Assembly (NCBI GenBank): GCA_964035545.1
Contig: OZ037768.1
Coordinates: forward strand, 17,343,875-17,407,874
Direction of reading: 5' to 3'
DNA from: Bugula neritina
Taxonomy: Eukaryota > Animalia > Bryozoa
Length of the DNA: 64,000 nucleotides
The notes under the pieces were generated by a model that did no database searches, was not told the DNA's origin, and saw nothing but the letters and a program-made list of their open reading frames with translations. Within the stretch, counting starts at the first letter, position 1, and each line of letters begins with the position of its first letter. This document shows, piece after piece, positions 7,265 to 53,052 of the stretch. A program made the position numbers and the translations under genes.

Positions 7265-8990
7265 TTACCTTTTGCATCTCTGATAACAAGTTATCAACTT
7301 GATTATATAATAAAAAGCTTAGAACCTGTCAAAAGATTAAGAGAAGTTTTTTTTCCAAATAATCATTAATTTTAGCCTACAGTGTTCTAAGAAAAAAATA
7401 CAAGCAGAGTTCTATATCAGAATAAAAGTATCAGTAGCAGCATCAGGTTAAACTTTAAATTGCAATTTTTTTTAATAAAAAAACTCAATACTGGCATTTT
7501 AAATTGTTTTTGTAGACCATTCTCAAGCTTTTCCAAATACCAAATGCTGCTGTCAGCATTTCATTAAAATTCCATACCGGATCAACTACAGAAATTAATA
7601 TATTGTATAGTTGAAAACTATGAAAATGAATGAATTGATTACTAGTATATTGTCAGCTTGTTACAACTTATGAAAATTGAACTTCAATAAAGCATATATT
7701 AGTAAAATGAACAGAGTCAATCAGATTTTACATTTCAAAAAATTTTGTTTTTGAACGACTTTGTGGTGTTGTATTATTACAATTTGCCCTACCCTATGCT
7801 CAATCATTATAATTGTAAGAAATATAATAATAGTCCCTATGATTTACAACTTTCCAATTATGCATTTTGGTATTTTTTTTGTTTTTGATATTCCTCATCA
7901 CTCTAAATATTGCTCTATAGTATAGCTTTTGATAAAATTCAGTTTGGCAAGCAAATTGATCATGATATTTTGAAAAAAACAAAGTCGAACATATGTGCTG
8001 AGGCAGAGTATTTTCTCAAACAATCGTAGATGGCTTATCTTATTGCTTTTACCTTGTTACTTTAGACAATAAGATGCAAACAGTCATCATCCAATGTTGA
8101 CTGCTAAAAACAATAAATCTGCTACTGATGTGTTGCTGGACTTGCTAAGACTTTGCTTACAACATAACTGTTGAAATTATGTTTTCAAATTTATATTATT
8201 TTCCTGAGTGCCGAAATTAATTATACAGTTTACACTATGGTGCGCCATTCAGCAAACCTATTAGAGTTAGCAGCTTTGACGAACTTTAGAATTTTTATAA
8301 ATACAAATTGTTGAATTTAGAATCTAATTTTTAATTTCTTTTTCAATTTCTTATTGCTGAAACAAATACATTCTTTAAAATGGATACAAGCATAGTTAAA
8401 ATACATTGTGTTTTTTTAACAAAATTGTAACAGATTAACCAAAATGTTTGCTTTTATGCTAGCACCAAAAGATTTCAATTTATAAACGATCCATTAGTAT
8501 TCAAGTGACAGTTTGTTTTAGATTATCTGTGTCTCAAACTTTGTACAAACTACAGTTTTACCAAATCATCAACAACCAAGTTGAATGTGTACTTGCATGT
8601 GAGAGAATGAATGGTTTTTGATGTTGATTTTTCTTGTTAGAATGCTGAGAAGTGTCGAAAGTGTTTAATTCAAATTATTAATCAAATCAAATTCCTAATA
8701 TTAACGGGTTTGCTGAATTACTAATTGGTTATGAATAAAATTAATTGCAAGTCAACAGTTTGAGCAAAATATCTTACGCTGAGTGAGAACACATCCCAAT
8801 ATTTACTAAGTAAATTTTTTATTCCCGCACGTTTTGCTCGCCTTAAATCTATTTGCCTGCGAGCTTATCTTTATCTTATATAGTTTTGAGTTTGTCGACT
8901 ATTAACTTGTAATTAGAATAAGTTTATAATAATATAATTATAATTATGTAGTGATGTTATTAATAACTATAAGATTAAATTTATCACTTA

Positions 8991-9028
<38 letters not shown>

Positions 9029-9031
<3 letters not shown>

Positions 9032-9484
9032 GACCTCAAAGGAAAAATGGCATATGTCCAATTTTGCGAATTTTCACAAATTGAAAATTAAAATTTGGAA
9101 ACTTGCAACTGCTATCGATATGAATCAATTCTAACCAAATTTGATATTATGGTTTTTGAACATGTTTCAAACAACTAGACAAAAAGAAATTTGACCAAGT
9201 TTACATAAATACACAATTTGCTAGTCTAAAAATATTTCACATGCGCACCGTCATTGGTCAATTGTTATCACATGACTGGACATAAGTTATTTTTCTTTTG
9301 TGATGACTGGACATAGGTCTTTGTTGCTTTGAGGTGGGTTTCAAATCCAGCCTTAAAACCATGGACAAAATTTGTTTTTCTCTTTGATAATTTTATGACT
9401 AAAACTTTAATACTTGAGCTATCCAAGGGAAGAAAAATCTCATTTTTTTTGAAAATGGACAAATGTCGTTTTTCTTTTGAGGTC

Positions 9485-9487
<3 letters not shown>
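9029..9487. mobile_element. Non-autonomous TIR DNA transposon (MITE) inserted in (TA)n, possibly Sola1-type
   Basis: ~32-bp imperfect TIRs: gaagacctcaaaggaaaaatggcatatgtcca versus the reverse complement of tggacaaatgtcgtttttcttttgaggtcttc. Both flanks are (AT)n, consistent with an ATAT (AWWT) TSD. Confidence 0.8.
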
Positions 9488-9560
<73 letters not shown>

Positions 9561-9616
9561 AACTCATGCACACGCATATGCATATAAACTCACGCAATTA
9601 CGCAAGTTTATGGTCA

Positions 9617-9740
9617 CCATCCCTGTGAGGAAACCATTGATGGAAGGAGTTTTTGTTAAATCGGCTAAGAACTTATTCAGATGGGGTACAGGAGCAATTA
9701 TGACTGGATGCTCTTCCATCCAATGGTCTTTGCCGGGCTA
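9617..9740 (-). mobile_element. SINE family A, 3' portion
   Basis: ccatccctgtg...ggctaagaacttattcagatggggtacaggagcaattatgactggatg is nearly identical to 23157-23240. Confidence 0.75.
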
Positions 9741-9789
9741 TGTGGTACCTGAACTTCATCACTGATTGTAGTATCCCTCCTAGATATTT

Positions 9790-10560
9790 GCAGTAATCTG
9801 TGTGCTCTAGTAGAGTATTATTTATTGTATACTGTGGGACTGTGCTCTGAGACTAGAAAGCAACTATCTTACACTTTTTGGCATTAAAACACATCTCTGC
9901 CCACATATTTAGTGAACCAAGGTTGGCTTAGAAATTTATCTCGTCAGTTGGGCTGGTAACAATTTGGTACATCAGGGTATTATCGGCAAAGAGGCCAACA
10001 AAGCAGTCGACATGGCTTGGGAGATCGTTGATATACACTGGAAATAATACAGGGCCCAGCACTGAGCCTTGTGGGACTCCAGAAATTCATGGGAAGTAAA
10101 TTAGATTTGGCACCATCCAGCACCACTGTTTGAGACCTGTTACATAAGAAGTAATAAATGATAAATCCAGTCGAGCAGGTAACCGTATATTTCAGCGATG
10201 CTTGACAGTTTTTGTATTAGCAATGTGTGAGGTAATCTATCAAAGGCCTTTGACAGGTCTAGAAGTGCAGCGTGTAGTTAGATTTCTTATCCGTTGCTCT
10301 TATTATAATCCATGTAAGGTAGCACAGATCCGGGTTTCACATGAGAGCCCTTTTCTAAAACCATGTTGTCAATTGTGAAGCCAATTGTAAACTTTTTCCA
10401 ATATATTTCTGAGCACTATGTGTTCCAGTAGCTTGCAGGGGATACTAGTTAGACTGTTAGGGAGATTGGTTGGTGGTTGTTGGCATCTGTCTACGCCCGA
10501 CTTGTGGATGGGAGAAATATGGGCAGTTTTCCACTTGGCTGGCAGTTTCCCAAGTTTGAA
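9790..10560 (-). pseudogene. Decayed LINE reverse transcriptase fragment
   Basis: The minus strand gives frameshifted RT motifs: PISLTSIPCKLLEH (~10410-10470), QHGFRKGLSCET (~10330-10370), SGVPQGSVLGP (~10050-10083) and FADNT (~9978-9992). Confidence 0.85.
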
Positions 10561-10621
10561 TTCGAGTGATTTGTTATTAATTTTAGAATTGATCTCAAAT
10601 TATCTAATTTAAATTATCATT

Positions 10622-13600
10622 TTGATCTTGATCTTGATTGGGTCAAGTCCCAAGACCTCTCGAAGAGAGTAATTGTGGGACCCTCGGATCTATCCAGGCT
10701 CAGAAATCCGCTACTATCTCCCCCATACGGAGCTCCCGGACAGTGCGCAACAGGAAACCCTGCAGGTACAGGCTCGAATCGCAGGCTATAGCATTGAAAG
10801 TGTTAATACGGGTATTCATGTTATGGGTTGAGGATTTCATAGATTTAAGTGTGTAATTTAAGGTTGGAAATAAATCATTATTTGCAGCAATATGACACAA
10901 CAAAGAAATTCTCTGTGACTGTCTGCGCTTTCTTAATGTTTCTAGTCCTAGGTCAATTTTGGCATCTGTTACCGATACCTCTCTACCCTTTAAATTTTTA
11001 ATGAACCGTACAGCCCTATTTTGGGTAACTTCTAATTTTGTTATTAGATGTTTATTGCATGGGTCCCATACTTCAGCAGCATATTCTAGGAGAGGTCTAC
11101 AAAGAGTTTTATACGCAAGAATTTTAACATTTTCTGGGGCATTTCCTAGTGTGAGCTTGATTAAACCTAGTACTCTGTATGCCTTTGATATGATATTTTC
11201 GACATGCTTATTCCATTTCAAATCTGCTGATAGCAATATTCCAAGGTATTTTACAACTCCAACTCTATTCAGGGGATCTTCTCCTAATTTATAAGTGAAG
11301 ACATTTCCCATATTTTCTGTTTTCTTACCAAAAGTGATGACATTACTTTTCTTTGAGTTGAACTTCATATTGTTTTCTTTTGCCCACCTATAAAGTCTAG
11401 AAAGATTTCCCTGTAGTTTATGATGATCATTTGGATCAGTAATGGGTAGATAAACAAGAGTGTCATCAGCAAAAAGCCTGATTGTACTATGTGTAACACA
11501 GTTTACAATGTCATTAATAAACAAAACGAATAATGTTGGACCCAGCACACTTCCTTGTGGAACCCCGAAAGTCACTGGTGCTAAGTCCGAAGACACCCTG
11601 TCAATGACCACTCGCTGTGAGCGTCCAGTTAAGAATGATGAAACCCATCGAATAATGCAGGGATTTATTTTTAACAATATCAATTTCTTTACAAGAATAT
11701 GATGGTCAATTACATCAAAGGCTTTAGAAAAATCTAGCACAACTGCATCTACAAAATGTCCTTTATCTATATGCCTTAATATATCGTGGTTGACAGTAGC
11801 AAGCTGAGTAACACATGAAAAGTTGCGGCGAAAACCATGTTGGTTTTCATGTATCAAATTTTCCAATTGTGTGTTTAAATGATGCAGAACTACATGTTCA
11901 AGAATTTTACAGCAAATGCACGTTAATGATACTGGACGATAGTTGGAAGCTAGAGTGCGGTTGCCCTGTTTAAACACAGGTGTTACATTTGCAGTCTTCC
12001 AGTCATCTGGCACTATTCCTGTATTGAGTGAATGATTGAAAATACACACCAGTATTTCTGCTGTTCGATCTAAGTCTACTGTGAGATAGTTCTTTGTGAA
12101 TCCATCTACTCCAGGAGCTTTACCTTGTACAAGTTGTCTCAGCAGGTTCACAACTCCTTCTTTAGTTACCACTATATTATCTTTCTCAGTGACTGATGGT
12201 AATTCTGGTAGAGGTGATGGAGTGGTAAATACACTGTAGAAGAAACCATTCAGAGTGTTAGATATCTTAGTTTTATCATACGTCAAGATACCATCGTTGT
12301 TTTCTATGGAAGTAATCTCATTATCATTCCCTTTTAGATCTTTAACATATTTGTAAAACGGTTTTGTGTAGCCACTGGAAAGAGGTTGGTATAGACGATT
12401 CACCAGAAAAGATGCTTTTAGTTTTTTGAATAATTTTTTATTATGGCGACGTAATTCTTTATATTTAGCCAAGTGATCAGCATCACCAGTCGTTTGAAAG
12501 CGGTTGTAAAACTTTCGCTGTTTCTTACATGCCCGTCTGGCTTCATCATTAAACCAGAGAGGCTCATGTAGATTTCTAGGCTTACGTTGTTTAGTTGGGA
12601 CATATGAATCAACAAGTCTATGTAATTCAGTCTTAAATGTATTCCATATAACATTAATATCATATTTCAACATCACTTTGTTTTTAATAGTATGAAGCAA
12701 CTCATCTAGACCAGTTGTAAACCCGCCGAGTTCGATTTTGTGAAATAGCTTGATTGGGGGGATAGATGGTTTCTTTTTCTGTTCTACTTTACCAGTCAAG
12801 ACCGTTTCTATCATGAAATGGTCGCTAATACCCGGTGTTATTACATTTGTGCTTTGAACTTTATATGACAAGTCAGTACAGATGAGATCTAATATATTGC
12901 CTGCTATGTGCGTAGATTTATGAACAAGTTGTTCCAAATTATTATCATTTAGAAAATTACAAGTCAGTATAGTATGTCCTCCAACAAGTTGAAAGGCCAG
13001 TATCTTCCCAATTGATTCTTGGAAGGTTAAAATCACCGGTTATGAGTTTTCTATTTGTTGGGTATTTAGTGTGAATATTTTTCATGTACTCAAAGAATGA
13101 GTTCATGTCACGTGAAGAAGGGGGTCTATAATAGCAAGTAAGATTGCAATATTCCTTGCTATCCAGTCTAAAACATACTGTGATTGCTTCTGCTTCTGTT
13201 TCACACCTGATTAGCTTATGGGGAATTTCTACATTTATGGCAATCAATACACCACCTCCGTGCGAATCACGATCTTTTCTATATACTACTTTGTCTTTGG
13301 GAGAAAACAATTGAGAATTCAAAAATGCATTATCTAGGTGTGTTTCAGTAATACAAATGATATCGTATTCAACGGAGAGGGTTTGAATCTCCAATATTTT
13401 CCCCCTTATTGATCTCGCATTTACTGTTAATATTCTCCGATTATCATGTGTTACTGTCTTACTTTTATTATCTTCCCGTTTGTTATCTTGTACTTGTTTT
13501 CTGGATTTTTCTGCCTCAATTCCCTCAGCTCGCTTCTCAGTTGAAAATCCTTTTCTTGTCCCTCTTTATTCAAGTCAAGACGAGCAAAGACTCCTTCTAT

Positions 13601-13720
13601 TTTCTGAGCGTTGATGCGTTTTAGAAATTCCCATTTTTGAACTTCTGAAGCTAGTGTTAGTCTCATGGGTCTAATCTTGTCAACTTTTTTTTGTCCTAAT
13701 CTTGTGGCATTATCTCTTGA
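10622..13720 (-). mobile_element. Non-LTR retrotransposon (CR1/L2-group-like LINE), 5'-truncated: ORF1 C-terminus + APE + RT
   Basis: ORF1 tail at 13451-13700. APE endonuclease motifs ILTVNARSI, ICITETHL, DRDSHGGGVLI and YYRPP, ITGDFNLP at 12957-13440. A frameshift lies near 12960-13030. The RT ORF 10700-13036 has NYRPVSLT, QHGFRR, LDFSKAFD, GVPQGSVLGP, LFADD and KYLG. A short 3' UTR ends in (CAAGAT)n-like repeats at ~10622-10640. Confidence 0.95.
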
Positions 13721-13739
13721 TGCGTGAATTTAATTGTTA

Positions 13740-15720
13740 TTTATTTATATTATAATTAATATTTATCAGTTATTAATTAAATTTTATTACCACTGTGACT
13801 GTCATTACGACTATCATAATCAATTAATGAATTTATTATAATTAGAAATAAGTTTAATTTCATTAAAAACTATTTATTAGTATTACTATAACTATTACTA
13901 TTAGTATTACACTCAGTTTGAGTTACTAACTGGCTTACATTTGGTCTAATTCCACGTTAGAGTTAGGCTCTTAGACTGAGTTAGTCTTGCAGTTACACTG
14001 CTGCAGTAAGTCATAAGTGTAACAGTTGTGAGTTAATTTTTACTAAAAATTAAAAGTTAACTTTTACTTTAAACTTATAATTATTCATTATTGATTCTTT
14101 AACTTCAACTTTAAGTTTTATATAAACAACTTCAATTAAGTTAACAATTATCTCAGAATAAGAATCAGAATCAGTTACTGTTACTGTTAGTACTACTAAC
14201 AGTAACAGTAACTCTAACTTAGTAAGTAAAAGTTAGTAGTGTTACTGTTAGTGTTACACTTACAAGTTACAATGTTAGCAATTAGCTAAAAAATGAAAAT
14301 CGCTCCCAGCTTTTTCTTAAATGTCGAATTAATTACAATATCAGAATGAGTGATGTCATTATTATAGTTATATTAAATTTAATAATAATATTAATATATA
14401 TTTTATTTTTACATTTGATGAAAAATCGGTAATTCCCCCAAGGTAATTCCTTAGAAAGTAAAAAGTTCTAACCGCTAATTCACGGACTCGCGATTTGAGC
14501 TACATTGGCCAATATCATCGGCTTTATATTACGGCCTAATTGCGTTTATAGAGTTATTTTCGTGATGATGATAGAAATTCAGATAACCGTCTAAGTCTAT
14601 AACCTTACAAACTTAAACTAACTTCAACTTCCATTCCGTTCTAGTTTCTACGCTCATAAAAGTTCATTCTTACCCTACTAGTTAGTGTTATTGTTATAAT
14701 TTAAACTTGAAGTTAAAGTTATTCAGTACACACTGATACTACGCCTCCCGGACTTTTGCGTCTAATGTAAGTGTATATTAATATTGTATAATAATATTAA
14801 TGATAATAAATAAATAATAAATAATAATACTACAGTAATAGTAATACTAATAGTAATAGTATGAATATGATTACTAATGCCAATGGCAATGCTAAGCCTA
14901 ATGCTATGGTTATTGATAGTGATACTCTAAGTCTAACTGATGGTCATTACATATTGATGATGATTTTGATATTTTATTATTTATATTCAATATTGATATT
15001 GCCTGTTGCCAATTGGCATTCATTTTGTTTTTATTTTTCATAGTAATACTCATACTCATACTGATACTGATACTCATACTCATAGTCATGGTCACACTCT
15101 GATACTGATAGTGATACTGATACTCAATCTCATACTGATAGGCTACTGATAGTGATACTCATACTCATACTCATAGATGATAGTCTTACACTATCATACT
15201 AATACTAATAGTGATACTGAGTCTGATAGTGATACTCATACTGATGATCGTCACAAACTGATAGTAAGTAATACTCAGAGTCAGTGACACTGACAGTCTC
15301 ATGCTGATAGTGACACTGACTGTGATGCTGATGCGGATACTGATAGTGAGAGTCATAACATTAACTCATGAGTGATAAGTCAAAACTCATGCGATGGCTG
15401 ATTCTGAAAGTTGAGTAAAAGTTGAAATAGACAAGGTTAAAATAATTGTAATCATGTTCATATTGATATTGTATTTGTTATAATATGAATATTAATTATA
15501 ATTTCCTAATTTTCAAATTGAGACTAATAATAAGTATCATAGTATGACTATGAGATTTGTTCAATCATAGTGGTCCTAATGCTGATAGTAATAGTCGTAC
15601 TCATGCTGTCAGTGTCACCGTGATAGTGTCAGTGTTAATATGAAAACAGAGAGGAAATTATCAATAGCAACAGTTAACAAACGATATGAATATCAAATTC
15701 AATATGAACACAGAACACGA
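13740..15720. repeat. Hexamer-periodic low-complexity field (5-bp direct repeat + single C/G) around the USP40/KIAA0319-like divergent promoter
   Basis: Examples: taata-g-taata-c-taata-g-taata-g (14836-14859), atact-c-atact-c-atact-g-atact-g-atact-c-atact-c-atagt-c (15046-15087) and caatg-g-caatg-c (14881-14892). Confidence 0.85.
14470..14660. promoter_or_regulatory. Candidate bidirectional promoter core
   Basis: A CpG-rich, non-periodic island lies between divergent genes. It contains a palindromic double CCAAT box ATTGGCCAAT (14504-14513) and TCGCGA (14488-14493). Confidence 0.4.
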
Positions 15721-17958
15721 TGATTATATTATTCCAACCTTTTAAGTTTGGGCTAGGCATTTCGTTTTCTCTCAAACTAAAGTTTTAACTATTGTTCAAG
15801 TTAGTTACAGGGTCACTGTGAGTTTCAGGTTGTCTTTTACTTTTACCATAACTAAAAACATATGTAATACTAATACTATTAGTTATAATAATAGTAATTT
15901 CTTGTTATGTGATTGTATAAGTATAAACTTGAACATAACATTATTGATTAAACTTAATTTGTATAGAATAAACTATTTTTTCACAGCTTTTCAGTGATTT
16001 ATGCTCGAACTAAAAATTAAGATGACATTAGTGCTGAAATTGTTGTATTATATTAAATATTATTGTAATGGTGAATGCTACATTGATGAGGAGTTTCCCA
16101 CTTATTTATTAAATGGAAAGTGTTTTTTTTTCTCAAAATAAAAATCACTACTGGCAAATTTCGTAGCCCAATTGTATGATAACTCGATTACTCATTTGCC
16201 GAGAGTTGATAATAAGTTTTTTGCTCTAAAGTTTCTCCTTTCACTGCAGTCGTTTAGGAATATAGGTGTGTGCTGAGATGTTGATACTCACCACGATTTT
16301 GAATTGACACCTTCGAGTAAGACATATCATTACCATGTTAGTGAAAACAGTTGATATTTAAATCTATAATTGTTCAGGTATTTCTAAACACTTGTAAAAA
16401 TCCAATATAGGATAATTTTGCACAGATACTTTTTTATCTTGGGGAAATATAAAATTTAAATAATGAAAAATTTGATAGTTTTATCAAGTTACAATGTTTT
16501 GGAATGCTAAGAAACTTAGCCTTCAACATACGAAAATGTGAACAGTAAGCATCATGTTTTTATTGTGTAAATTTGCTGTACATATTCCTTTTGCTGCATG
16601 CTAATGCAAGTAATGCAGCTGTGTTTTTGAGTTGGTCATAATTTGGATCGTATTATCATGTGTAGAAGCTAATTCAGACCCTTCAGTAACGCCAGACTTA
16701 GTTTTTTATCATACATTCTATACCCATGTTTACAATGTGAAGTAGTGTCTATATTTTTAGCAATCTGTAGTAAATATTTAGTACCAGAGCAGAAAATGCT
16801 TGCCTATACTCACGAGCCTCCTAAGCTCTAGTTTTTTTATTGCCCCAAGCAGTAGCTCATGTAATCTAAATAAGAGTTGATAACTATAATAAAAGCTATA
16901 ATTACTAAATTAAGAACCTAATTAGGTGAGATATGTCTAATTTATTCAACTAAGATCTACTCTGTTAATCAGTATAATTATCAGCTGTTATTGTAAAAGA
17001 GGAGACCAAACTATTTTCTTTTATAAGTTGAGTATTACACCAACTTGTAGTTATTTAATTGAAGTTGCAGATAGATAATCCTAGAAATATTACCTTCAAG
17101 TTGTTTATCTTGTAATTATTCAAATAATTCGTCCTTTACTAACATACATATATTTTCAAGTATATTTCTCCATTATTTTATTCAGTTTATTTTAACCTTT
17201 AATTTACTCTTTCATAGCCTAAGCCCTCCAGTACATGGGCGTTATCACATTTAAGTTATCTTACTCTGTGTTTGTCTTGCATTTAAATGTTTTAGGTTTA
17301 CTGGTCATTAGACTATTTGGTCGAACTATGTTGGTGGCACTCAAATTGAAGGTGTAACTGTTTTAGTCTTTTGGGATACACTATCAGCATATATCATCAG
17401 TGAATATGCTACTTCACTGCATAATAGTAATAGTTGGACTTGTCTTGGGTAAGTAGTATTAGCAGCTGTGTAGAATACAGTCTCTAGCACACTTACTTAC
17501 AGTGTGAACCTCTTGAAAATACCTGTATCTGTGGTGAGAGTTTGCACACCTGTAACGTTGCTATACTGGACTGCAGAGGGCATAAAAAATGACTATTCAC
17601 TTTGTCTTTTCACCATATGGCATCAGTAAACAACTGACAATTGTTGAATTTTAAAGTATAAGTTTGAATTTGTGCATGCTACTAAACACTTTTAAATAAT
17701 TTCTACTAGTGGCTATTTATAGTTTGTACAAATCAATTATTGATGCTCCATAAGACTTGTTACTGCACATGAATGCAACTTATACAGTCTAATTTGAGTT
17801 TCCCTGTCATTATAGCAAACTAATGTTACTGAAAAGTGGTAATTAATTTGATTAATGACATAATTCATGGAAATAAACTATCTCAAATAATATAATTAAT
17901 TTTAGAAAGAATCATTAACAGTATTTATTGTATATCATATCTTGTATATATTATCCAG

Positions 17959-26900: not shown

Positions 26901-29900
26901 TAACCATTTCTTAATCTAAAATGTAAACTCAAATATTTCGTTGTAGTTTTAGAACTATCATTTTTTGGTATTAACTTGTTTGAATCGTGTGAAAATATGT
27001 ATTTTGGTTTTTGCATTCTTATTTATAAGTTATATTACAAATTGCCTGTATCAGTAATTCTCGGTGTATAAGAGGGGTCACTGCTTTGATATCTGTGGAG
27101 TTGCCTTTCCTATTATATAAGTAGTTGTTAAAAGTACCGATTCAAGCTTTGCCTGGTATAGTAAAATGATATGATCAGTTAACATGTAACTCCTCCTTGA
27201 AAGATTTTTTATAGCGTATTTTATTCACTGCATCTGATATTTTAGTATTTGTCTCTTACAAGATTCTAATCGGCAACTCTTTAGTATTGATGTGCAGCAT
27301 CTACATTTTCTCTACAGGTCAACAGTGTCTATATTTTCTGTATAGGTTAACACTGTCTACCTTCTCTCTACAGGTCAACAATGTTTACATTTTCTCTACA
27401 GGTTAACCGTGCTGTTCCTGGTTAAAGACTACACCTCACACAATCACTACTCAGTTAGAAATGGAACTGTAGTTGAAGATCAACTCAAACAGAAATTGCA
27501 GAAAGATAACGAGCTGCTGGGCTTCACAGTTTCTCAAATCGACACTGTTGGTTAGTTTATCTTCAAGTGAATAATTGTGCAGAGTTATACTAGTACTCAG
27601 TAGCTGCTGATGGGATTATTTCAACAAAAACATAATTAACTTTTTGTATTTTACTTACAAGTTGGAAATTTATTGGTACTAGTCTTTTATAAAGGAATAA
27701 CAACGGTCAACTGTGGCAATTGGAATTAAGATTATATGTTTTATTGATGTAGTTGAAAAAAATATTCATCTCTTTGAGATATTCGTTTTAAGTTTTAAGA
27801 TCTTTCAAAATATGAGATAAGTTTTGTTTACATGATTTCACTTACTATTAGCTCAGGTACCAAGGTCTTCTGATGTACACTTTTTATATAATTAAAGTTT
27901 GAGATTTACTAAATTCATCTTGTATAAAGATATGTTCATCAGGACACAAATTCTATGCTCCAGGAAGACACATATGTGTTGTGAATGGTTTACATAATCT
28001 TAAGCATTTTTTTCCTCCCGCATTGTATAATGTACTTTTAAGCATGCAAGATGCTATATTAGAATAAGTTAGTTTTAAGCTTCCTAATTAGAAAAAAAAT
28101 GTCATGAACTCTTTATTCTCCAACTCTGCAGCTTGGGTAGCATAATGTGATTTCAAACTGTATTGTAATTGTAACTGTTGTTGGTGATTATATAGTGTGT
28201 CAAAATGATTGTTCTGGACACGGGTATTGTGATCAATTCTCCAAGGAGTGCGTATGTGAACCTTTCTGGATGCCCAACTACGCTCGGGCCACCTGGCAGG
28301 GAGAAAGTAATTGTGGTAAGTTGAACCATTTACTTGTTACTTAGTTAAATCTAATACATTGTGTTTTATTTGTAAGATTTCTGATTAAAATGTTTAGTTT
28401 AAAATCTCAAAGTAAGATACAATTATACGTGCGATGTCTTCTCACAATTGCTATTTAACTCTAGCACTGATGTCAGTGTTTAACTTTTAAACTTATTTTA
28501 TACATAGCACAGGCATTTTATTCCCTGCCTGTAATAAAGTATTTTACATTAGAGTACCGTTTGTATCACTGCCATCATTAAATACATTTTCAGATTATTA
28601 TGTGATGTTGAAACAGTAGGATATTCTAAGTATGCAAACATGTAGCCTGATGAAGAAAATTCTGTGTGGGTTTGCATAGAGCAAGTGTTGTGTTGCTGTT
28701 TTAGATTGGAGTATACTCTACGTGGTGGTGATAACCATAGCCTCCTTGATTGCTCTCATGGCTATTATCTGGATGTGTGTCTGCTGTACTAGAAGGTGTG
28801 TATCTAACTCTTCATTTAACTCTATGAATAAATGACATGTGCATATAACATAATACGCAAGACATTGCATGTGCAAAGGAATGCGAAAGTTTATCGCTCA
28901 ATGCCCATGATTCTTTAACTTTCAATTATTGCCATTTTTGGTAACAAATATTCATGAAGATTTCACATTCCTTGTGTATCTGTTTCACTCACATCCTTTA
29001 TTGCCTTCTGATGTGGGTGAATTGTACATGTTATGTTATATGCACTGAAAACTGTACCAGGCATTTGCACTGTCTGTTACAGGCGTGTATATGCAATGTC
29101 TGATATTTCTGGTATAGTTGTTGTAGAATCGTTGTAATTCTTTGCAGGTTTACATTTCAATACAACTATAATAACAGGTTCGAGTCACTTCATTTTGTGC
29201 ATACATCAGTACTGTTATTGTTCTTCCTGTCAGTGTGTTTGTTTCACAGATATTAAATAGTGTTTATTGTAAACTGTAGTTATCTCCTCTGTACTACGGC
29301 CATGCTTCTACCAGCGCATGTACTTATGTGGTTGTCTCTGTTAGAATTATGTTATTGCATCATGCTGTGAAATAGATTTCTGTTTACAAATAGGATGTAA
29401 CATGATTATAAACATAGATTTTTAGCTTTAAGATTGAATGGTTCAGTGAGTTGTGGGTGGTTATAACATCTTGTAAAAGACTACTTTGGAGGAAATATAA
29501 TATATATCTACTAACCTTGCAATCTCTATCTTTTTACTGTTGTTTGTTTCATTCACAAATCGTTCTCTCTTGTCGCACATTAACATTTCAGATTTGGTCA
29601 CCCAGTTTTAACTTGTGATTGTAATTGGTAAGTGGCAACTGCTTTGCAAATATTCGATATTAGTTGTTGACATGTATGTAGATAGCCAAATGGCTATCTA
29701 CATACATGTCAACAACTAATATCGAATATTTGCAAAGCAGTTGCCACTTACCAATTTAATGTACAAACAAAAAATACTACAAAGTCTTATCAAGTAGTAC
29801 AGTTGATTATTGGGAAGAAAGTCATTTTACCTTCAAAAACTGTTAAGGTTTCAATTATGTGCATTTGATTTAATTCTAAATATAGGTTTTATAATTTATA

Positions 29901-33557: not shown

Positions 33558-33978
33558 GGGTCAGTTTACTTCATTTAGTACACACCAGCAAATTATGACC
33601 TAACATTAAAGTTTGCTCCAAATCCATTGAAATTTACTATACATGGTATTTTTATGTGCTGGTTTTAATTACGCATAACAGCAAAGGCTGGGAGGGGATT
33701 CCCCAGCATTAAAGCACAGGTCATTGTCATATGCACTTAATATTCTATATGCACGGACCGTTACGAAAAAACCGTAACGGTCCGTAACCAAAACTAGCTG
33801 AATAATTAGGGAAAACGTGGGAAATGAAACAAAATTAAAAAGAACTTTGATTATTTAGGTGTATTTATTGGTGCTTAACTAGTTTTGGCCAAAAAACCAT
33901 GCTCATTACCAGCTAAATTGTGAAAAATAGCTAAAAACTGAAGATTTCGAGTGTGTACTAAATTAAGTAAAATGACCT
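33558..33978. mobile_element. MITE family B copy just upstream of the DNAJC12 ATG (possibly Kolobok-like)
   Basis: TIRs gggtcagtttacttcatttagtacacac / gtgtgtactaaattaagtaaaatgacct, with the right end overlapping a TTAA. There is an internal 13-bp perfect hairpin at 33753-33785. Confidence 0.7.
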
Positions 33979-34199
33979 TAATAATCAATAACAAATTTAT
34001 CAATTAAAAGTTTAAATCTATAGGCTTAACTATATTAAAACAATATTATTATAGACATTAATGTATTTATTGATATTTATAACATAAATATACAAATGGT
34101 GAAATGACTAGATGTTATTTTCGTTAAACAACTTGAACTTAACTCAGAAGTTTACCCAAGTTTTACTAAAAAAGAAAACAAAATAATTCAAACTATAAT

Positions 34200-35100
34200 T
34201 ATTTCACTCTTCACTCAATATCACTATGATTATTAGTATTAATCTTACTATTGTCTATTGCTATTAGACTTAGTACTACTACTACTATTACTACTACCAC
34301 TAGTATTTACTAGTATTACTACAAGTACAAGTATAACATTATAAAAATTTAAGAAAATGCAAAATTTGTGTTTTCGACTTCAACTTGAAGGGACGGGTCA
34401 GTTTTTCTCAACTTTGGATCCAGACCAATTTTGATTTCTTAGCCGAACGTAGGAAACAGAGAAAATTAAATTTTTATGCTAGGGCAATAAAGCGGTATTG
34501 AGGTTCCTCAATTTAATACAATTGAATGACAATAACACCAGACATGGATCTAACCTATTTATTCCACAAATCAAAACTAATGCCTATATTATTATTATCA
34601 TCATTATTATTATCTATATTTACTCTTTTTGGCCACGAAAAACCCGCAAGATGTGAAATGAAATTTCGCAGTCTTGAGTTTTCAACATATTTACCTTCCA
34701 TAAAAGGTTTCAGTGGGAAAAATTGATTTAATTAGTAATAGTATTGCTGTTAGAAAAACCAACGGTAACTGTAAATGTAACTGTGACAGTTGAGTTTCAT
34801 CCTGATCTTGATCAACCCAAACCGATATGAATACCTATAAGTGAAAATCAGTATGAAAATCTAATTCTAACTCAGAGTTAGTAGCACTAAGTCTAACGTC
34901 CAACAATAACTGCTGCTACTGTTACTGTTAGAGTTTCAGGTTTAAATTGAAAATCGAAATAAATTTTACAAACTAGTAATTCACTAAATTACTAACAGTA
35001 ACTAGTAACTACTAGTACTAGTAATACTATAGTAATATTACTATTAGTATCAGTATGACTATTACTAATACTAATAGTATTACTATAGTATTAGTATTAC
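34200..35100. repeat. 5+1 periodic field, DNAJC12 side of the divergent promoter
   Basis: Contains tgtta-c-tgtta-g, tagta-c-tagta and taata-c-taata-g type units, plus agtat-c-agtat-g (~35046-35057). Confidence 0.75.
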
Positions 35101-36925
35101 ACAAACAGAATATATCGTCCACTAAAAAGAGGGAACTCAAAGCCTTTCTTCAAACTGCTTAAAGCAGACAAAAACAAAAGACAAGAGCTATTGGTACTGA
35201 AGGACGATCAAAATATAGTGACGGGAGATCCTGTCCAATGCGCTGAGTTGTTGAACACTTTTTTCCAGAGTCAGTTCCAGCTGGGCTTTATGGCAGAAGA
35301 CTTCTCAAGGATCGAAACCGATGCCCAAGATTCTAGTGATGTTACACCAGAAGGGGTTGCCAAACTTATCCAAAATTTGCCAAATGGAAAATCGCCAGGA
35401 CCTGATGGAATTCGAAAGCCTGACATGCTCATAGACTTGGAGGGTACTGCAAGATGTCTCGCTCTGATCTACAAAAGTTCCTTAGACACAGGTAAACTGC
35501 CAAAACAGTGGAAACTTGCAAATGTCACACCAATACATAAAGGCGGGGACAGTGAATCTCCAAACAACTTTAGGCCCGTATCCCTGACAAGTATTCCCTG
35601 TAAAATGATGGAGCACATCGTGCTTCATCACCTCAATGAAAAGCTTGACAGTGTGCTTCACCATCGACAGCATGGTTTTAGGAAAGGACTGTCCTGCCAA
35701 ACTCAACTGTGTGTTACCTACCATGACCTAGTAAAAGCAGCCAATGAAGGACATACTACCCATGCAGTAGTTATGGATTTCAAAAAGGCTTTTGACAAGG
35801 TACCTCACCTTATGTTGCTCCAAAAATTACAAGAGATACCGGGTATAAATGGATACCTCCTTAACTGGATACTCGATTTTCTTTCCGACCGACAGCAGTC
35901 TGTTGTACTTAGAGGGGCAAGCTCTCAAAATTGCCGAGTAACCTCAGGAGTGCCGCAGGGATCTGTGCTAGGCCCAATTCTGTTTTTGTGTTTTATAAAT
36001 GATCTTCCTGATTTGTTGTCATGTAAAGTCAGCCTCTATGCTGATGACACTCTACTTTACCAAACTGTGAACACCACTAAGGATGTAGAACTATTCCAAA
36101 CTAACATTAACGCTGTATGAGTGGTCTCTAAAATGGAAAATGCCCTTCAATGAACAGAAATGCCAAGCAATTAATTTTGGTAAGGTAACCCCTATATCAC
36201 ACTACAAACTCGGTACCACATGCCTTGCGTGGGTACAAAGCACTAAATACCTTGGGGTAACCATCCAGTCAAACCTAAATTTTGATCAACACATAAATAA
36301 CAAGTGTACCAAGTCCCGGAAAATTCTTGGCGGCATCAAGCACTTGATGTATGATGCCCCAAAAGATGCTAAGCTATTGGCTTATAAAAGTCTATGTAGG
36401 CCTATACTCGATTATGCGGATGTGGTTTGGGATCCTGCGGCTAGGAGTAAAGTGCATGATATAGAGCTGGTCCAGAACAGTGCCATACGATTTATAAGCA
36501 ATATGAAGGGACGTGCTGACAGTGTTTCTGAGGCGAGGGATGAGTTAGGACTCCGGTCGCTGGAAGACAGACGAAAAAATCATCGACTGTGTTTGCTGAC
36601 CCGAATTCTTTAAAATGAGGATCAACACCAATCTCTATCCAGAGCCTATGACGAAATAATTGAAGGCAGGGAACTTGTAACTGTAACCACTCGAGCGGCT
36701 GCCAGAGGAGAGTTTATCTCTATATCATCTAGGAAAAACTTATTCCACACTAGTTTTCTACCACGAACAATTCGTGAAATGCGCGGAGAATATAATAACT
36801 AATTACAAAACAGCAAATGCTGTAACTAGTGCTAACCCTGGTCCACTGTAAGTTTTCACTAGAGGCTTCCCTATAGACTTTCCAGTTGCTGCGGAAGTCC
36901 TACCTCAACTGAGGTAATAAACTGA
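35101..36925 (+). mobile_element. 5'-truncated LINE (RT only), same broad clade as the 10.6-13.7 kb element
   Basis: ORF 35191-36120 has KSPGPDG, NFRPVSLTS, QHGFRKG, DFKKAFD, SGVPQGSVLGP and LYADD. A frameshift at ~36115 continues into 36140-36613 (KYLG, YKSLCRPILDY). After a nonsense codon at 36611 the frame resumes to SFLPRTIREMR. The 3' end carries an actgaggtaat duplication. Confidence 0.93.
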
Positions 36926-38520
36926 GGTAATTACAGTATTAGATTTAGTATTACTATTACTATTAGTACTAGTAGTATTTATTAGTCTTAGTGAAATATT
37001 ACTAGTAGTAACTAACTACATTTAATTTTAAAAATTATAGTTTGAATTTCAGTTTTCACTTTCAGGCTTTACTTTTATTTTTAGCCTTTTAAATTTAGGC
37101 ATGAGTTTCAAGTTGAAGTTTCATATCTTTTTAGTTTTTTATTTTATCAACTTTCGATGAACTAGAATATAATATTAATTATAATATAATAATAATGATA
37201 ATCACTTTTATTGAAAATCAAAACATTGATTTTCAATGAACAATGAATTTAAAAAATGATAGAACTATTAGTATTTTAAGAACACAAAGATGACTATAAC
37301 TATAAGTATATCAGTTTCAGTTTGAGTATGAGTATCAGTTTGAGTATGGAATACGAATAACATCAGCGCGGTTTTAGTAATCCGCGTGACGCAAAGGGTT
37401 AAAGGGCATATAATATTATAATAATATTAGATGTTAGAAGCCGTGGGCCAGTTGAATGTGATCCTATTGAGACCCGCTATGGTCGTAATATTTGGAAGCT
37501 ACGCGTCTTCCGAACAGTTGAAGATGGGTCAAAATGTCTAGAGCCGTAGTGTCTTAGTTATCGCAGTTGCATCTCTTGTTTCAGTTATTTCGATGTCACA
37601 TAGTGATAATCACAATCATATTGAATTTGATACTCGATAGTCATGCTGATACTCATAGTCATGGTGATCAATTTTGGTTAATAATACTTTTAATAAAAGT
37701 ATAATCACAATGCGAAGTGATCATAGTTTTAATTGCGGCAAATGAGAGTGGTGATCTATTTATCTGTGGCTTTATAATAATAATTATTAATTTATTCACT
37801 TTTAGTTTTAGTTTTACTTTTAGTTTTACTTTTACTAAATTAATTTACCTTTATCCCACTTTTCTTGACGTGAAAGAGTGGGCTAAGGGAGAAAGCCAGT
37901 GGTTTATTTAACCCCAATAATGTAGCATGCAAAGCCAAATGTATCACTATCTTATGAGTATCTATAATTTATAATTATATATTTTTATTAAAATACTTGG
38001 TACTGACTACTGAGAGTGAGACAATTTGAATTTCTATTTTCACTTGGTTTGATTAAGATTGCATTTCAATTTGAATTTGCCTTTGTCTTTGCAGTTTCAG
38101 TTTGTTATACACGGGGAGGGGTGCTCACACTTTGTTTGATGATTTAATTTAAACTGCGAAACTTGCTCAAAAGTCATACCCGGACCGTAGTCTGTAGTCA
38201 GTAGACCGTAGTGAGTTTTAGTTTTTTGATAGTAATGTTGATTGCCATGGTGATGGGTACGTTATTTCACCTATTGTTGATGTTTAGTCTAATTTTAAAG
38301 CATCAGACTAATGGTGATCATTATCATTATGATTATATTTGATAATTTGATAATGATCTTGATTATTATTATGGTAAAGGTAAAATACAATCTGACTTTG
38401 AGTTAGTCAATGACAATCACAGTATGAATGTGAGTGCGTGGACTTGGAGATGGTGATGCACTTGCTTTCATATCCACAATGACAATCACCAACTGAGTTT
38501 ATATAAGTATAAAAACTAAA
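36926..38520. repeat. 5+1 periodic field, COPS6 side of the divergent promoter
   Basis: agttt-c-agttt-g-agtat-g-agtat-c-agttt-g-agtat-g (37313-37348) and tttta-g-tttta-g-tttta-c-tttta-g-tttta-c-tttta-c (37800-37835). Confidence 0.85.
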
Positions 38521-38691: not shown

Positions 38692-41600
38692 ATGGCTGGT
38701 AGCAGTAGCGTTGCCAGTACTAGTATCATGGACATTGATGGCTACAAAAAGTCAGTGTTAGCTCCACCTGGAACTGTCCCCTCTGTACATGTCAATGCTC
38801 ATCCTTTAGTTTTATTGAATATATCTGAGCATTGGACTAGAACAAGGGCACAAAATGGAAGGCCGCAAGCAGGTAAGTCTTACATAATGTTCCGCGAAAA
38901 GTTAGTGTATACCTATGATTGGTATTTAAAATGTTTTGGACACTATTTTAATATGTAAGACACCTCAATCCTATTTAGTTCAAATTGAATAATGTTTAAA
39001 ATGATAGCTTGAGTTCTGAAATTTGACATGACCGAAATGTTGGAAAGTATTTTAATAGTTTTAATTCAATTTATTAGTTATAGCATAAGATATTTCAAGC
39101 TGAATACAAACTTTTTATGCTGTACCTATTTTCATTATTAAAAAATGATTTTGTTGTCATTTAATGTATAAATAAGCCTGATTTATTTATTAAACTAATA
39201 GTCCTTGACACAGGAAGCGTATTTTATCACAATATAAAGTTTCTAAAACTAAGAAAGGTTTTTTTGAAAAGCATTCAGATGGGTTAAATAACAAAACATG
39301 ACTACTACACTCAACCATTAATAAAATTGATTTTGTAAAAGGTCCATAAAGTTCCCAGTCGATAACTTGACCCATGAAACTAAGCAGTCAACATATAATT
39401 TCAAGAATGCGTCTGTTTTTGTGGTTTCAACAACAACCTCTGGTCACAGATAAGACCAGTTTCAGAGACTCAGACTCTAATATTTTATTCTAGTGCCATA
39501 GGCACCACCTGTGTCAGCCATAAATATACCAATGTGCTGTGATTGGAAACTGAGAGCTTCTCAATTTTTACCAAGTATAATATATGTTTATATGCAAAAT
39601 TTCTAATTATTTCTTTAGTGTTTGGAGCTGTAATTGGTAAGCAGACAGGACGGCTGGTTGAGTTATTGAATTCATATGAGTTAGTCACATGTGAGGTTGG
39701 GGGCTCAGTGATCATCGATGATGCCTATTATCAGATGAAGTCTGAACAATGTAAGTACTTAAAAATGTAATGGTAGAAGCAAGTAGAAGTACTCAGTTAA
39801 TGAATAGGCCATTGCTAAACGCAAATTTTCTCCATTCCATATGTTGAATTCTGGACGCGTTATATGTTGGTCTAAAATTTCTCAGTTGTTGCTGTAATCT
39901 GAACAGCTTGTTACATGATTGTTGGTATATTTTATTTTATATTGTATTTATTATTAATTGTAGTTAAGCAAGTTTTCCCCGACTTCGATATGCTGGGTTG
40001 GTATTCAACCGGAGAAGATCCTACAGATGCGGATATAAAAGTAACTTTTCTGAGTTTTTCCGACTATTCTTTTTTCACTTTATTTCCAGATTATTTTTTT
40101 TTGTAATTTTTTTGTAGCTGTGAGCACCATTTAACTTCTGGTTTACCCGCCGGCCTAACAATTTCAAACTGGTTATTTCTGATTAATTGATTAAATAGAA
40201 TATATTGAAACCAATAAAGTTATCTCGTGTCACAATCATACCTTAAATTTAACATTTTTTTATATATAGCATGCAATATTTTTTGTGGTGGCCTATATGC
40301 TAATTGTTTCTTATTGTACTATTCTATTAAAATGATTTTCTAGTATTGATTAGCATGTCCTTCGTTTTTCGTGTTGTTTATTTTAGATCCACAAACAAAT
40401 ATGTCAATTTAATGAAAGTCCGATACTGTTTAGAATGGATCCACTGTTGAGAAAATCAGAGACCGTGCCAATCAAGTGCTATGAGTCAGTGATTGACATT
40501 ATAGAGGGAGAGGCAGTCATGTTATTTGTAGAGTTAAACTACTCTTTAGTTACTGAGGTAGTATTAGTACAGTCAAATTATTTAATTGACTTTAATTAGA
40601 AATTTTCAAACATGCCATGTAAATCTTGTAACTTGTGAGCGATAATTCTCAACACTCATCTAGAATTAGTGCATGTTTATGCAGTTAGTGACTATGAGAG
40701 AGCCTAATATTTTTGCCGTGATGTGTTGTACTAAAACAAGTGTGGTTATCAGGATGCCGAAAGGATTGGTGTTGATCATGTTGCCAGAATCTCCAATGTC
40801 GAGTCTTCTAGTGCCGAGGGGGAAGACTCCGTAGTCACACAGAATCTAACTGCACAGCATAGTGCTATAAAGATGCTAGCTAGCAGGTTAAACATTCTAA
40901 AGGCATACTTACAAGGTATTTATGAAAGTTTAATTGTTTTAATTGACTTGCCGGTGATTCCATTCATCTCAAATACCTACTAAAGTCTCTAGTTTTAAAA
41001 AATTTGACTGCATTTGATTAACTGTAGATTTTATATATAAGACTTTTGCAAATAATATTCAAATTTTCTATTATAACTAACTGCTCAAATTAAAAGTTAA
41101 GCTCTTATTCAGAGTAGTTTTATAATATACTTTCAATCATAAAAGTGATTTCTAGTAATTGGATTTATGTTTCAAAAGTTTTGTTTGGTAATGTAATTTG
41201 CATTTAGAGATGAGTTTAAAATTAAAAAAGTAGATCAGAATTAAATGTGACCCGCCATCACAAAACCAGGAACGTTGGTGAATTTATGAAAATTGATTTT
41301 ATTGTTTTAATGTATAGAAAAATTTCTTCTGAACAATTTGGTGTTGGTTTTATGCTTGTAGCTTAAATAGAACTCAAGTTATCATCTATTTTTGTTAAGC
41401 CCTTCTGAAATTTTCTGAAACCGCGATTCCGAGAAAATGGCTTTTGAAGCAAGCATTTAAGTTTTTCAGCTATAAATTTCAATTTATTTTTATTGAATCA
41501 ATTTTAAGCCAAACAATTATTAAAAGTTTTAAAAACTAATATTACATCAAACTTTATGTTACAATAACTGAAAAATAGTTTTAAAAAATAAATAACTAAT

Positions 41601-44020
41601 AATCTCTAAAGAGGCAACAACTCCGCAAAAACATCGGCCATAAGCCACCATCTTGAAAAAATAAATCTTCTTAGTTACCAAACTTCGATAGCAATTTTAG
41701 AGGTGAAGGAGATAACAAGGTACTGCAAAACCTACTTTTTTGGAATCCTTGCATTTTTTTGTACTAGAAAAGTTAGTTTTCTAAAATAAGCTTTTTAACT
41801 TTGAATTTGACAAAATGAAATTCATCATTCAATTACGGTCTTATACAAATGCCGCCAAGTTCCTGGTTTTGTCGTGGGGAGTCACAAATGGTCAGATCAA
41901 AATTTTCAAGTAAGCATGATTAGATTACAACTATGACTATCATTTATGTACATGTATACCATGATATACACTCCGATGTTTCATTTTGGGTAAAAATGAT
42001 TGTTACATCTTGATCACAATTTTGATTTTTATTTTACACAGGTTAGCTTTAAATGATGTGTTGAATGGTGATGTTAATAATTCTTTGTAAAAACTATGTA
42101 ATTATTTTTATTGTGAAACTACTAAAGGCTAATACTTTGATACCATATGAAGTGTTCCGTTTGTGAAATATGTTCAAGAAGTTTCCCAAGTTTATCTAAA
42201 ATTCTTTCAATTTCATCAAGTTATTTGTGTTAATTGCTGATGGTCTGTTTAGGTGAGAATTTGTAGTGTACAACTTTGAGCTTTTACTAATTTGTTGCTT
42301 TTATTTATTCTTTTTCTTTTGGAGAGCAGAGGTAGTTAAAGCAGTGCTACTGACATTTTAAAACAAAATTCACTTGAAAAACCTAATTCTTTTAATCCTA
42401 ACAAGTTTTTTTTAGGATTATTGGTGGAGTGATATTTTGGTTAGTTATTTAGAAAACAAAATATTTTTGTGGGTTCTCAGGGTTTTTTCTCAATAGTTGA
42501 CTTTGAAATAAGTAATTAATATTGTTGGAGTTGTGACCCATACAATCTGTGAAACTATAAAATCTGATGAAGCTTTGTATTATTTTACAGCTATATCAGA
42601 TGGTGAAGTGGAGCCAAATCATGCTATTCTCAGAGAGTGTAACAGTATATGTCATCGTCTTCCAATATTGAATACAAAATCATTTCAAGAGCAATTTTTC
42701 AATGTATGTGTTACTCTATATAGTATAATATATTACCATAGACCTACATTGATTTGCTTACTCCTTTATTTATTAACTTTGATTGTTTAGCACATTAGAA
42801 CTTTTAGTTTCTAAAAATAATATTTTGTAGAGCAATTCTCTTTTAAAATTTGCTCTGTGTATACAGTGACATGTTTATACACTGTACACCTGACCATTTT
42901 TATGAACTGTAGCCAGTAATGCTGTGTTATAGTAGCATCATTTTCATATTCTCACCTCAGTGGTGACCTTTAGCAGTTTTGATGCTTATTTATTCTGTTC
43001 AATGTAGTATTTTCTTATTGCAGCAATGCAATGATGTGGAACTTATGGCATATCTAGGAATAATTACACAGGGATGTCAAGTTATGAACCAAGTATGTAT
43101 TCTTTTTCAAAATTCTTTTAACCTTTTAGCATAAAAATACATGGATGGATTTTTAATACCACCTGTTTCGATTTTGTAATAAGATTTTGCTGGAAAATGA
43201 TAGCTCCAACACCTCAAAGTTTTTTGAAAACATTTTTGCACTTTTCTCTTCGATAAATTTATTATCTCAGGTTTCTGAATTTGCTTCATTGTAAAAAATT
43301 AATGAAACAGAAAGTTAATGAGATTGAATGGAACTTTGTTCGACTTTCAAAAAATTTAAATCTGTTTCAATTAAGCAGGGTTAATTTGTGGATTTGGGTA
43401 GTTTTTTCTTCAGTTTTATTGCTAAAATGTTTGTTTTGGCTAGAAACTACTTTTTTATAAGTTCAGTATTTTGTAGCGATAACTCGATAATTAGCAAATT
43501 TAATGTGCTGTTTTGATTTATGGACTTATTGACAAAAGAATTATAGGCGAAATATTATATTAGTCAATGAATTGACTGTTTTTTTATAAATCAGCTATCA
43601 GACATTTGAGCTGTTGTTGTATCTCTTGCAAAGAATTGTTACTTGAAAAAGGCAAAATAAAAATCTTTAGATATTAGTGAAGGCGACTGTTACAGAATTT
43701 AATTTAGAAGAATAAGTAGTAAATTTGTATGCTGCAAATTTACAACCCTCAATGTTTCAAAGGCACTTAGTTTGTGAGGCAACCTACAAATTGTGTTTTT
43801 GTTTTAAATATTTTGTTGTTAACATTCCGTCTTATCACACTAATATTGATTGTCAGTACCCTCGTTATTTGTTCTACTCCAAACTGTGAAATTAAGCTAT
43901 TGCTTGTTAATGCTTTATTAAAATGTTTTGTAGTTTGTGTCCAAGTTCAATGTGCTGTATGACAGAGTGGGACCTGGGGGAGGGCGCCGAGGCCGAAGTC
44001 TTGCTTTTGTTGGTCTCTAG
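38692..44020 (+). CDS. COPS6: COP9 signalosome subunit 6 (MPN- domain), ~8 coding exons
   Basis: HPLVLLNISEHWTR (exon 38692-38872), GAVIGKQTGRLVELLNSYEL (~39619-39750), KQVFPDFDMLGWYSTG (~39964-40040), AERIGVDHVAR (~40753), HAILRECNSICHRLP (~42591-42703), QCNDVELMAYLG (~43024-43092) and FVSKFNVLYDR...* (43934-44020). Confidence 0.95.
41247..41885. mobile_element. Non-autonomous TIR transposon with 4-bp AAAT TSD (Sola1-like) in COPS6 intron
   Basis: aaat|gtgacccgccatcacaaaaccaggaac ... gttcctggttttgtcgtggggagtcac|aaat. Confidence 0.78.

Positions 44021-47388: not shown

Positions 47389-53052
<5,664 letters not shown>

Follow-up and report, generated by a model that had tools for sequence, protein, structure and literature searches.

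The low-complexity fields that lie beside presumed gene starts in Bugula neritina are written by one type of event, in which a seven-base target, X1 to X7, becomes X1 X2 X3 X4 X5 X2' X1' X2 X3 X4 X5 X6 X7, where a prime denotes the complement and either strand may be used. In this target X1 is mostly C, less often G and seldom A or T, and X2 is A or T. Each event brings a net gain of 6 bp and leaves the joint X2' X1' X2, a three-base palindrome around the complement of X1; where X6 already equals X2', the product reads as a 5-mer directly repeated after a single spacer base (5+1). Every event also makes fresh targets, nesting builds fields of 1-2 kb, and point mutation and deletion erode them. 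The likeliest source is a DNA break-and-repair process close to gene starts, and the best explanation, with a probability of about 0.45, is that a hAT-like cut-and-paste element, one that forms hairpins, duplicates 7 bp and prefers C-W-N-N-N-W-G targets, left the fields behind as stacked excision footprints. The window is the whole stretch of 64,000 nucleotides analysed here, C4:17,343,875-17,407,874 of the B. neritina assembly (216 Mb); positions are given within it, and gene start sites were placed from the sequence.

The region 13740-15720 holds 116 (5-mer)N(5-mer) matches, against a mean of 4.3 and a maximum of 16 in 300 dinucleotide shuffles. The comparison of such repeats with shuffled controls that the initial annotation had proposed gives a clear excess, and its description of many 5-mers repeated around one spacer base, as opposed to one microsatellite, is borne out. 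A single satellite was rejected because TRF reports many short arrays of differing hexamers. The same annotation had the spacer as almost always C or G, which the counts contradict (64 of the 116 spacers are A/T, as are 26 of the 73 between symmetric 5-mers); its end-complementary 5-mers make up 73 of the 116 matches, but the CnnnG type that it included is rare. Identity at lag 6 reaches 0.48, against about 0.28 at other lags, and the matching runs show sharp peaks at exactly 5 and 11 bases, in agreement with the +6 unit and the nested events that had been suggested. At this lag, the bases flanking a C/G mismatch are complementary in all 25 cases in the window and in 17 of 20 in an independent, unrelated 200-kb block (C1), and at other lags there are almost no such cases. 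Of the 453 matches in the fields, 409 involve hexamers in which a C/G has complementary flanks. One triple pattern has 9,490 matches across the genome, against about 250 expected from composition, and about 5,700 contigs per sequencing run fit 13740-15720, in four runs matched at 80% likeness that all behave as DNA and in which the matches are swamped by other fields. The 5+1 pattern is real and genome-wide, and no published description of it was found in the literature.

The order of the spacers, which the initial annotation had called irregular, favours alternation. Three genome-wide searches, with 100 matches each tallied by hand, gave 38 alternating and 8 identical C/G spacer triples, 32 and 5, and 30 and 9, or 100 against 22 when pooled (p = 5e-13), among the matches listed; the local triples are 52 alternating, 19 identical and 80 mixed. 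In simulations, a spacer that is the complement of its neighbour leads to proportions of 41:51:8 and a random spacer to 25:50:25, while slippage produces no alternation. The excess of alternating triples is therefore incompatible both with slippage and with element ends fixed as C...G. The source first suggested for the fields was a 5-bp duplication plus one base from an element with C...G ends, the resulting C:C mismatch being resolved at random. Such an element would account for the exact +6 unit, the C/G spacers and the promoter proximity; however, it predicts alternating and identical triples in equal numbers, as well as many C/G spacers between A/T neighbours, whereas a spacer with A/T on both sides is C/G in 22 of 100 cases among the matches listed, which is under composition. 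Neither does it place X2' on non-symmetric targets, and a search of about 330 kb revealed no element that combines C...G ends with a 5-bp duplication, so that this reading is hardly credible. Its variant with a 3-bp duplication and an ACT/TCA footprint falls to the same alternation test, and a plain 5-nt staggered cut leaves the obligatory extra complemented base unexplained.

The alternation also has a polarity, since triples of the form C..G number 116, against 44 of the form G..C. When an event in which C adds G on either strand is simulated, the eight triple classes come out as 25/25/8/8/14/14/3/3, and those observed are 22/25/10/6/18/14/3/2. After C, the spacer is G in 32 cases, C in 17, the complement of the right A/T neighbour in 24 and a copy of that neighbour in 27. 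Most A/T spacers are copies (44 identical against 8 alternating); A/T flips do not clearly belong to the rule, and a minority of events produce exact copies. Of 80 metagenome loci with the same hexamer, 60 have spacers that are identical, as slippage predicts, and this difference upholds the earlier view that the unit in the fields is not made by slippage. Four contigs that look fungal by eye are rich in the same hexamer families, but as exact copies, and offer a useful slippage control.

The form of the joint was obtained from a relaxed search (a 4-mer, two bases and the same 4-mer). Where the second base is X1', the first is X2' in 242 cases, 191 of them symmetric and 51 non-symmetric, and another base in 21; among the non-symmetric targets, X2' precedes the flip 51 times, against 8 for the mirror case, and the order X1..X5 X2' X1' X2..X7 follows from these counts. 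The copy class is less skewed (69/65 against 107/47 in 264 kb; Fisher p = 0.002, and p = 0.06 in the fields alone). End-complementarity is thus both preferred and created by the event. Forward simulation of the rule with point mutation yields a lag-6 identity of 0.47, triples of 48/61/25/10 (observed, 50/45/25/12) and run lengths distributed much as in the sequence; since its parameters were set by hand, the model indicates that the rule would be sufficient, and sufficiency only. Palindromes centred on a single base, with arms of at least 5, occur at 4-6 times background, against 2 times for even-centred ones and likewise 2 times for those with a 3-base loop. Flips show no strand bias relative to transcription (12 left, 10 right), while some hexamers are orientation-biased; no preference for GNA triloops was detected, and the period-7 analogue expected of an 8-bp duplication is unconvincing (15 against 9 in the control).

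The length-changing process is still visible between sister types. The assembly GCA_010799875.2, in which the gene order around the window is kept, and one JGI contig represent a sister type that is about 8-10% diverged. Between the two types, six-bp indels, whose direction is unpolarised without an outgroup, number 6 per 1.69 kb in fields and 6 per 14.9 kb elsewhere (9-fold, p = 0.0006), in line with the +6 excess near gene starts that the initial annotation had anticipated. All four interpretable cases fit a change from C-u to C-u-G-u. At the cleanest of these sites (38150-38165, plus strand, with the indel at 38155), the sister type reads C, a 5-mer, G, the same 5-mer and A, and the window holds one slightly mutated copy; the spacer is unlike either neighbour and equals the complement of the left one, hence the insertion there cannot be slippage. 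Polymorphic indels in the form of exact slippage copies, the outcome named beforehand as contrary to the footprint idea, are therefore not what this site presents. Length alleles of 0, +4 and +6 occur over 15344-15608. A combination of hexamer slippage with a separate, context-specific C-to-G mutation between complementary flanks, perfect runs being contracted, would draw on the exact copies that do exist, on the mostly copied A/T spacers and on the somewhat higher rate of C/G swaps at symmetric field sites (7/226 against 11/1265 between sister types). Point flips, however, can at most randomise spacers and not anti-correlate them, the spacer at 38155 matches neither neighbour, there is no C/G swap among the 16 best-supported SNPs of 13740-15930, and the same hexamer elsewhere keeps its identical spacers. 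This combination is improbable.

Regarding their position, the fields flank a core. The exon-by-exon protein search identified USP40-like, KIAA0319-like, BCL11-like and PIGM proteins in the window, together with two LINEs, and the first exon of COPS6 is a 98% match with a Bugula neritina protein. The left field (13720-14400) consists of drifting hexamers on what is presumed to be the 5' intron/UTR side of the minus-strand USP40-like gene, to which it would belong across a stack of inserted elements, and holds 13 symmetric C/G matches (19 per kb). It includes two odd palindromes, one at 14033-14053 with 10-bp arms around one C and one at 14173-14213 with 20-bp perfect arms around the C at 14193, whose arms contain 5+1 units. 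A non-periodic, CpG-richer segment follows at 14400-14610, with 0 matches, 5 CpG per 100 bp and CCAAT on both strands at 14504-14513, and is presumed to be a bidirectional core promoter. The right field (14610-15930, plus strand) has 37 matches (28 per kb) and contains the densest array, at 15038-15242, where 34 copies of a hexamer with two C/G bases agree at 70%; a donor-like GTAAGT at 14767, a motif match, suggests that intron 1 of the KIAA0319-like gene makes up most of this field. Coding and known-RNA explanations of the field were dropped, there being no ORF of at least 70 aa in 13740-15720 and no Rfam match for the field.

Symmetric C/G matches, at 19 and 28 per kb in the two arms, fall to 0.2 in the body of the KIAA0319-like gene and to 0 in both the USP40 body and the LINE. 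The pattern had been described as promoter-restricted; the near absence from gene bodies agrees with this, but the presumed core has no matches, and the fields flank it. Further fields were confirmed where they had been announced. The DNAJC12/COPS6 spacer has a field with 5+1 matches at 33980-35100, towards DNAJC12. At 36940-38520, fields with polymorphic 6-bp indels at 37110, 37287, 37658, 37707 and 38155 flank a CpG-rich core (about 37330-37600) that is conserved in the sister type, so that the arms-around-core layout is seen here as well. Upstream of the BCL11-like zinc-finger gene, the field at 45640-47000 has odd palindromes with arms of up to 14 bp. A weaker field with 5+1 matches (61100-61900) lies about 4.5 kb upstream of the last located PIGM exon and is taken to be tied to that gene. 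The main field of the C1 block, positioned where AT skew changes sign, has the same layout, as do most fields found by BLAST. The statement that fields stand at every gene 5' end goes too far, as this block of 200 kb contains just two field loci; in these 200 kb, partly read by eye, kinase-receptor, Ig/FN3-like and lectin-like genes have no field at their apparent starts. Two large tandem paralogous genes at 110-175 kb of the block read as C-type lectin/discoidin multidomain proteins, and the second has no field at its start.

Selection for a regulatory or chromatin code, either phased ACT/AGT/TCA/TGA words or nucleosome exclusion beside promoters, would suit the location of the fields beside CpG-rich cores, at broadly used genes, and the occurrence of a similar field in another animal. 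The fields, however, diverge as fast as introns or faster (10% against 7.5% in one comparison, about 7% in both in another) and lose or differ by blocks of 390-440 bp between sister types, whereas the core is conserved; moreover, selection on words cannot tie a spacer to the base six positions off. A code is accordingly a highly improbable origin.

Several inserted elements neighbour the fields. A minus-strand LINE with RVT_1 (10700-13700), free of 5+1 matches, adjoins the left field. It lies within the stacked insertions at 8990-13720, which separate the first coding exon of USP40 from its presumed promoter and comprise a LINE that is nearly intact, a LINE fragment and, at about 9025-9490, a TIR element flanked by TA. 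Small remnants of field survive at 8800-8975 and 10570-10640, and the sister type has a different insert in place of the stack. Another LINE (35100-36940) sits within the DNAJC12/COPS6 field and is missing in the sister type, as are two TIR elements with 4-bp duplications, possibly Sola-like, at 33558-33974 (TAAT) and 41247-41885 (AAAT). The perfect palindrome with 64-bp arms at 29623-29756 lacks 60 bp in the sister type, which points to a recent inverted duplication or loss. A 378-bp TIR element with GGCC ends occupies 51744-52121, within an intron of the zinc-finger gene. Two tRNA-like SINE heads lie in tandem at 60750-61070, beside a Gypsy-like fragment, and this SINE is also present upstream of USP40 in the sister type.

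The preferred reading, excision footprints of a hAT-like element, builds on the known chemistry of this superfamily: with a 7-bp duplication, flank hairpins that are opened one base past the tip give two 3-base overhangs, and their joining gives a 13-base product. In the fields, excision would seal each flank as a hairpin, with the complement of the element-adjacent base at the tip; the host would open the hairpins one base beyond the tip and join the two 3-base overhangs, best if X6 = X2'. The element would target open chromatin at germline-active promoters, and selection would remove events from the core and the exons, with a pile-up just beside them; the fields would then be a by-product and not a code. 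Ac/Ds footprints show palindromic additions around the complement of the element-adjacent base and are mostly joined by microhomology (PMC5873905), and TcBuster, a hAT element, prefers start sites (PMC3499496). Two of these features are found in the fields, namely a joint that is palindromic around the complement of the flanking base (X2' X1' X2, 242 against 21) and, indirectly, joins favoured by microhomology, as end-complementary targets (191 of 242) are partly self-reinforcing. Long odd palindromes are enriched, that at 14173-14213 being an example. The genome encodes hAT transposase frames of 470-563 aa, and three matches with identical score (C1:30462367, C3:28905230 and C5:1593917), each a 563-aa open frame, are likely copies of a recently active family. 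Families of hAT elements with a 7-bp duplication are reported only for fungi in the literature found (PMC12730594). A de novo search of about 330 kb (0.15% of the genome) yielded no TIR element whose duplication measures 7 bp or 5 bp; in the two TIR inserts seen to be polymorphic it measures 4 bp. The two-tip product (5-mer, two bases, 5-mer) has 134 matches, against 86 by chance and 9,490 for 5+1, and its predicted spacer is not in excess; its 6-bp version is also absent, and longer palindromic additions at position 5 of period-6 units are not in excess (11 against 14). A/T tips are not kept above copies (24 against 27), so a C/G repair bias must be assumed under the hAT reading. The fields behave like a hAT footprint; given that the two-tip product is almost absent and that about 330 kb yielded no matching element, membership is not established.

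The identical sequence rule would result from an element-free snap-back, in which a promoter-proximal break or a stalled fork provides a 3' end that folds back on itself with a 3-base loop, uses its own strand as template for one or two bases (X2', X1') and rejoins 5 bases back; a short template switch of fixed geometry, polymerase-theta-like repair and a host hairpin-forming nuclease are variants of it. Being one-ended, snap-back accounts for the missing two-tip product and for the absence of an element, the new C-G pair would stabilise the fold, and the enrichment of odd palindromes fits it. Short template switches are indeed known to make inverted repeats (PMC7954356). Realignment would need the base before X1 to equal X2', but this is so in 26 of 47 flips against 14 of 30 copies, and locally in 24 of 45, which shows that homology at the return point is not required. 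In addition, non-symmetric targets, which lack the priming pair, still receive X2', palindromes with a 3-base loop are at 2 times background only, and to our knowledge no enzyme yields such a fixed +6. Snap-back and its variants, taken together, are the strongest competing reading, with a lower probability than the hAT-like one.

Beyond B. neritina, a single locus from a different host animal, the metagenome contig Ga0224511_10094461, carries an alternating 5+1 field (1-830) on one side of a CpG-rich core, with 13 matches against 0.2 after shuffling, and a field of 3+1 units in intron 1 (1285-1985; 24 against 1.3). From its translated exons, the gene reads as PIN1-like, its short exon being without a Pfam match, and no orthologous match was found in B. 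neritina. The 3+1 unit would be the result expected of a 5-bp duplication under the same geometry. Its tract matches at least 20 places in B. neritina at about 78%, and period-4 tracts therefore exist there too. Three short COPS6 contigs from other animals contain no field. In a further, rather unlikely scenario, there is no transposon, and a host process of the lineage, either a nuclease that forms hairpins and has been domesticated or a dedicated repair route for breaks near promoters, writes flip-duplications of fixed geometry beside germline-active promoters; its version would be +6 in some animals and +4 in others, and the kilobase fields would have been adopted into promoter architecture.

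New in these data are the anti-correlation of the spacers, their C polarity, a joint that carries X2', the near-absence of a two-tip product and the 3+1 variant. The fields record germline mutation under an exact rule, which gives a sharp test on population data, and the process has built roughly 1 kb of DNA beside thousands of gene starts. If transposon-made, the fields would mean that cycles of insertion and excision can build a class of low-complexity promoter DNA that counts past visits, and would predict that animals harbour a so far unknown element duplicating 7 bp; a host origin would point to an undescribed repair route. Either way, they could map germline-active promoters from sequence alone.

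Compared with known systems, the fields share with hexanucleotide microsatellites and cryptically simple sequence a 6-bp period, drifting units and a location near gene 5' ends. Slippage, however, copies the spacer, as in the metagenome control loci, whereas the fields alternate, and new units are not exact copies of their neighbour apart from the minority mentioned above. Sleeping Beauty/Tc1 elements leave TA-CAG/CTG-TA footprints, in which the added bases come from the element ends and the flank is ignored. The net insertion and a central base that varies between complements are common to both, but here the added bases depend on the flank, and the independence of spacer and flanking bases that marks such footprints is absent (100 alternating against 22 identical among the matches listed). 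Short-range template switching likewise copies a few bases in reverse complement and leaves short inverted repeats (PMC7954356), although the known events are variable in length and scattered, while the fields have a fixed geometry and lie beside promoters. From the hAT elements Ac/Ds, Tam3, Hermes and TcBuster the fields differ in needing a 7-bp duplication and not one of 8, in showing one dominant product without the two-tip product, in their strong C bias and in having accumulated at thousands of loci, Ac footprints being far more varied. With these same elements they share a duplication whose joint is palindromic around the complement of the flanking base, joins at microhomology and occasional long palindromes centred on one base (PMC5873905), as well as the preference for start sites (PMC3499496).
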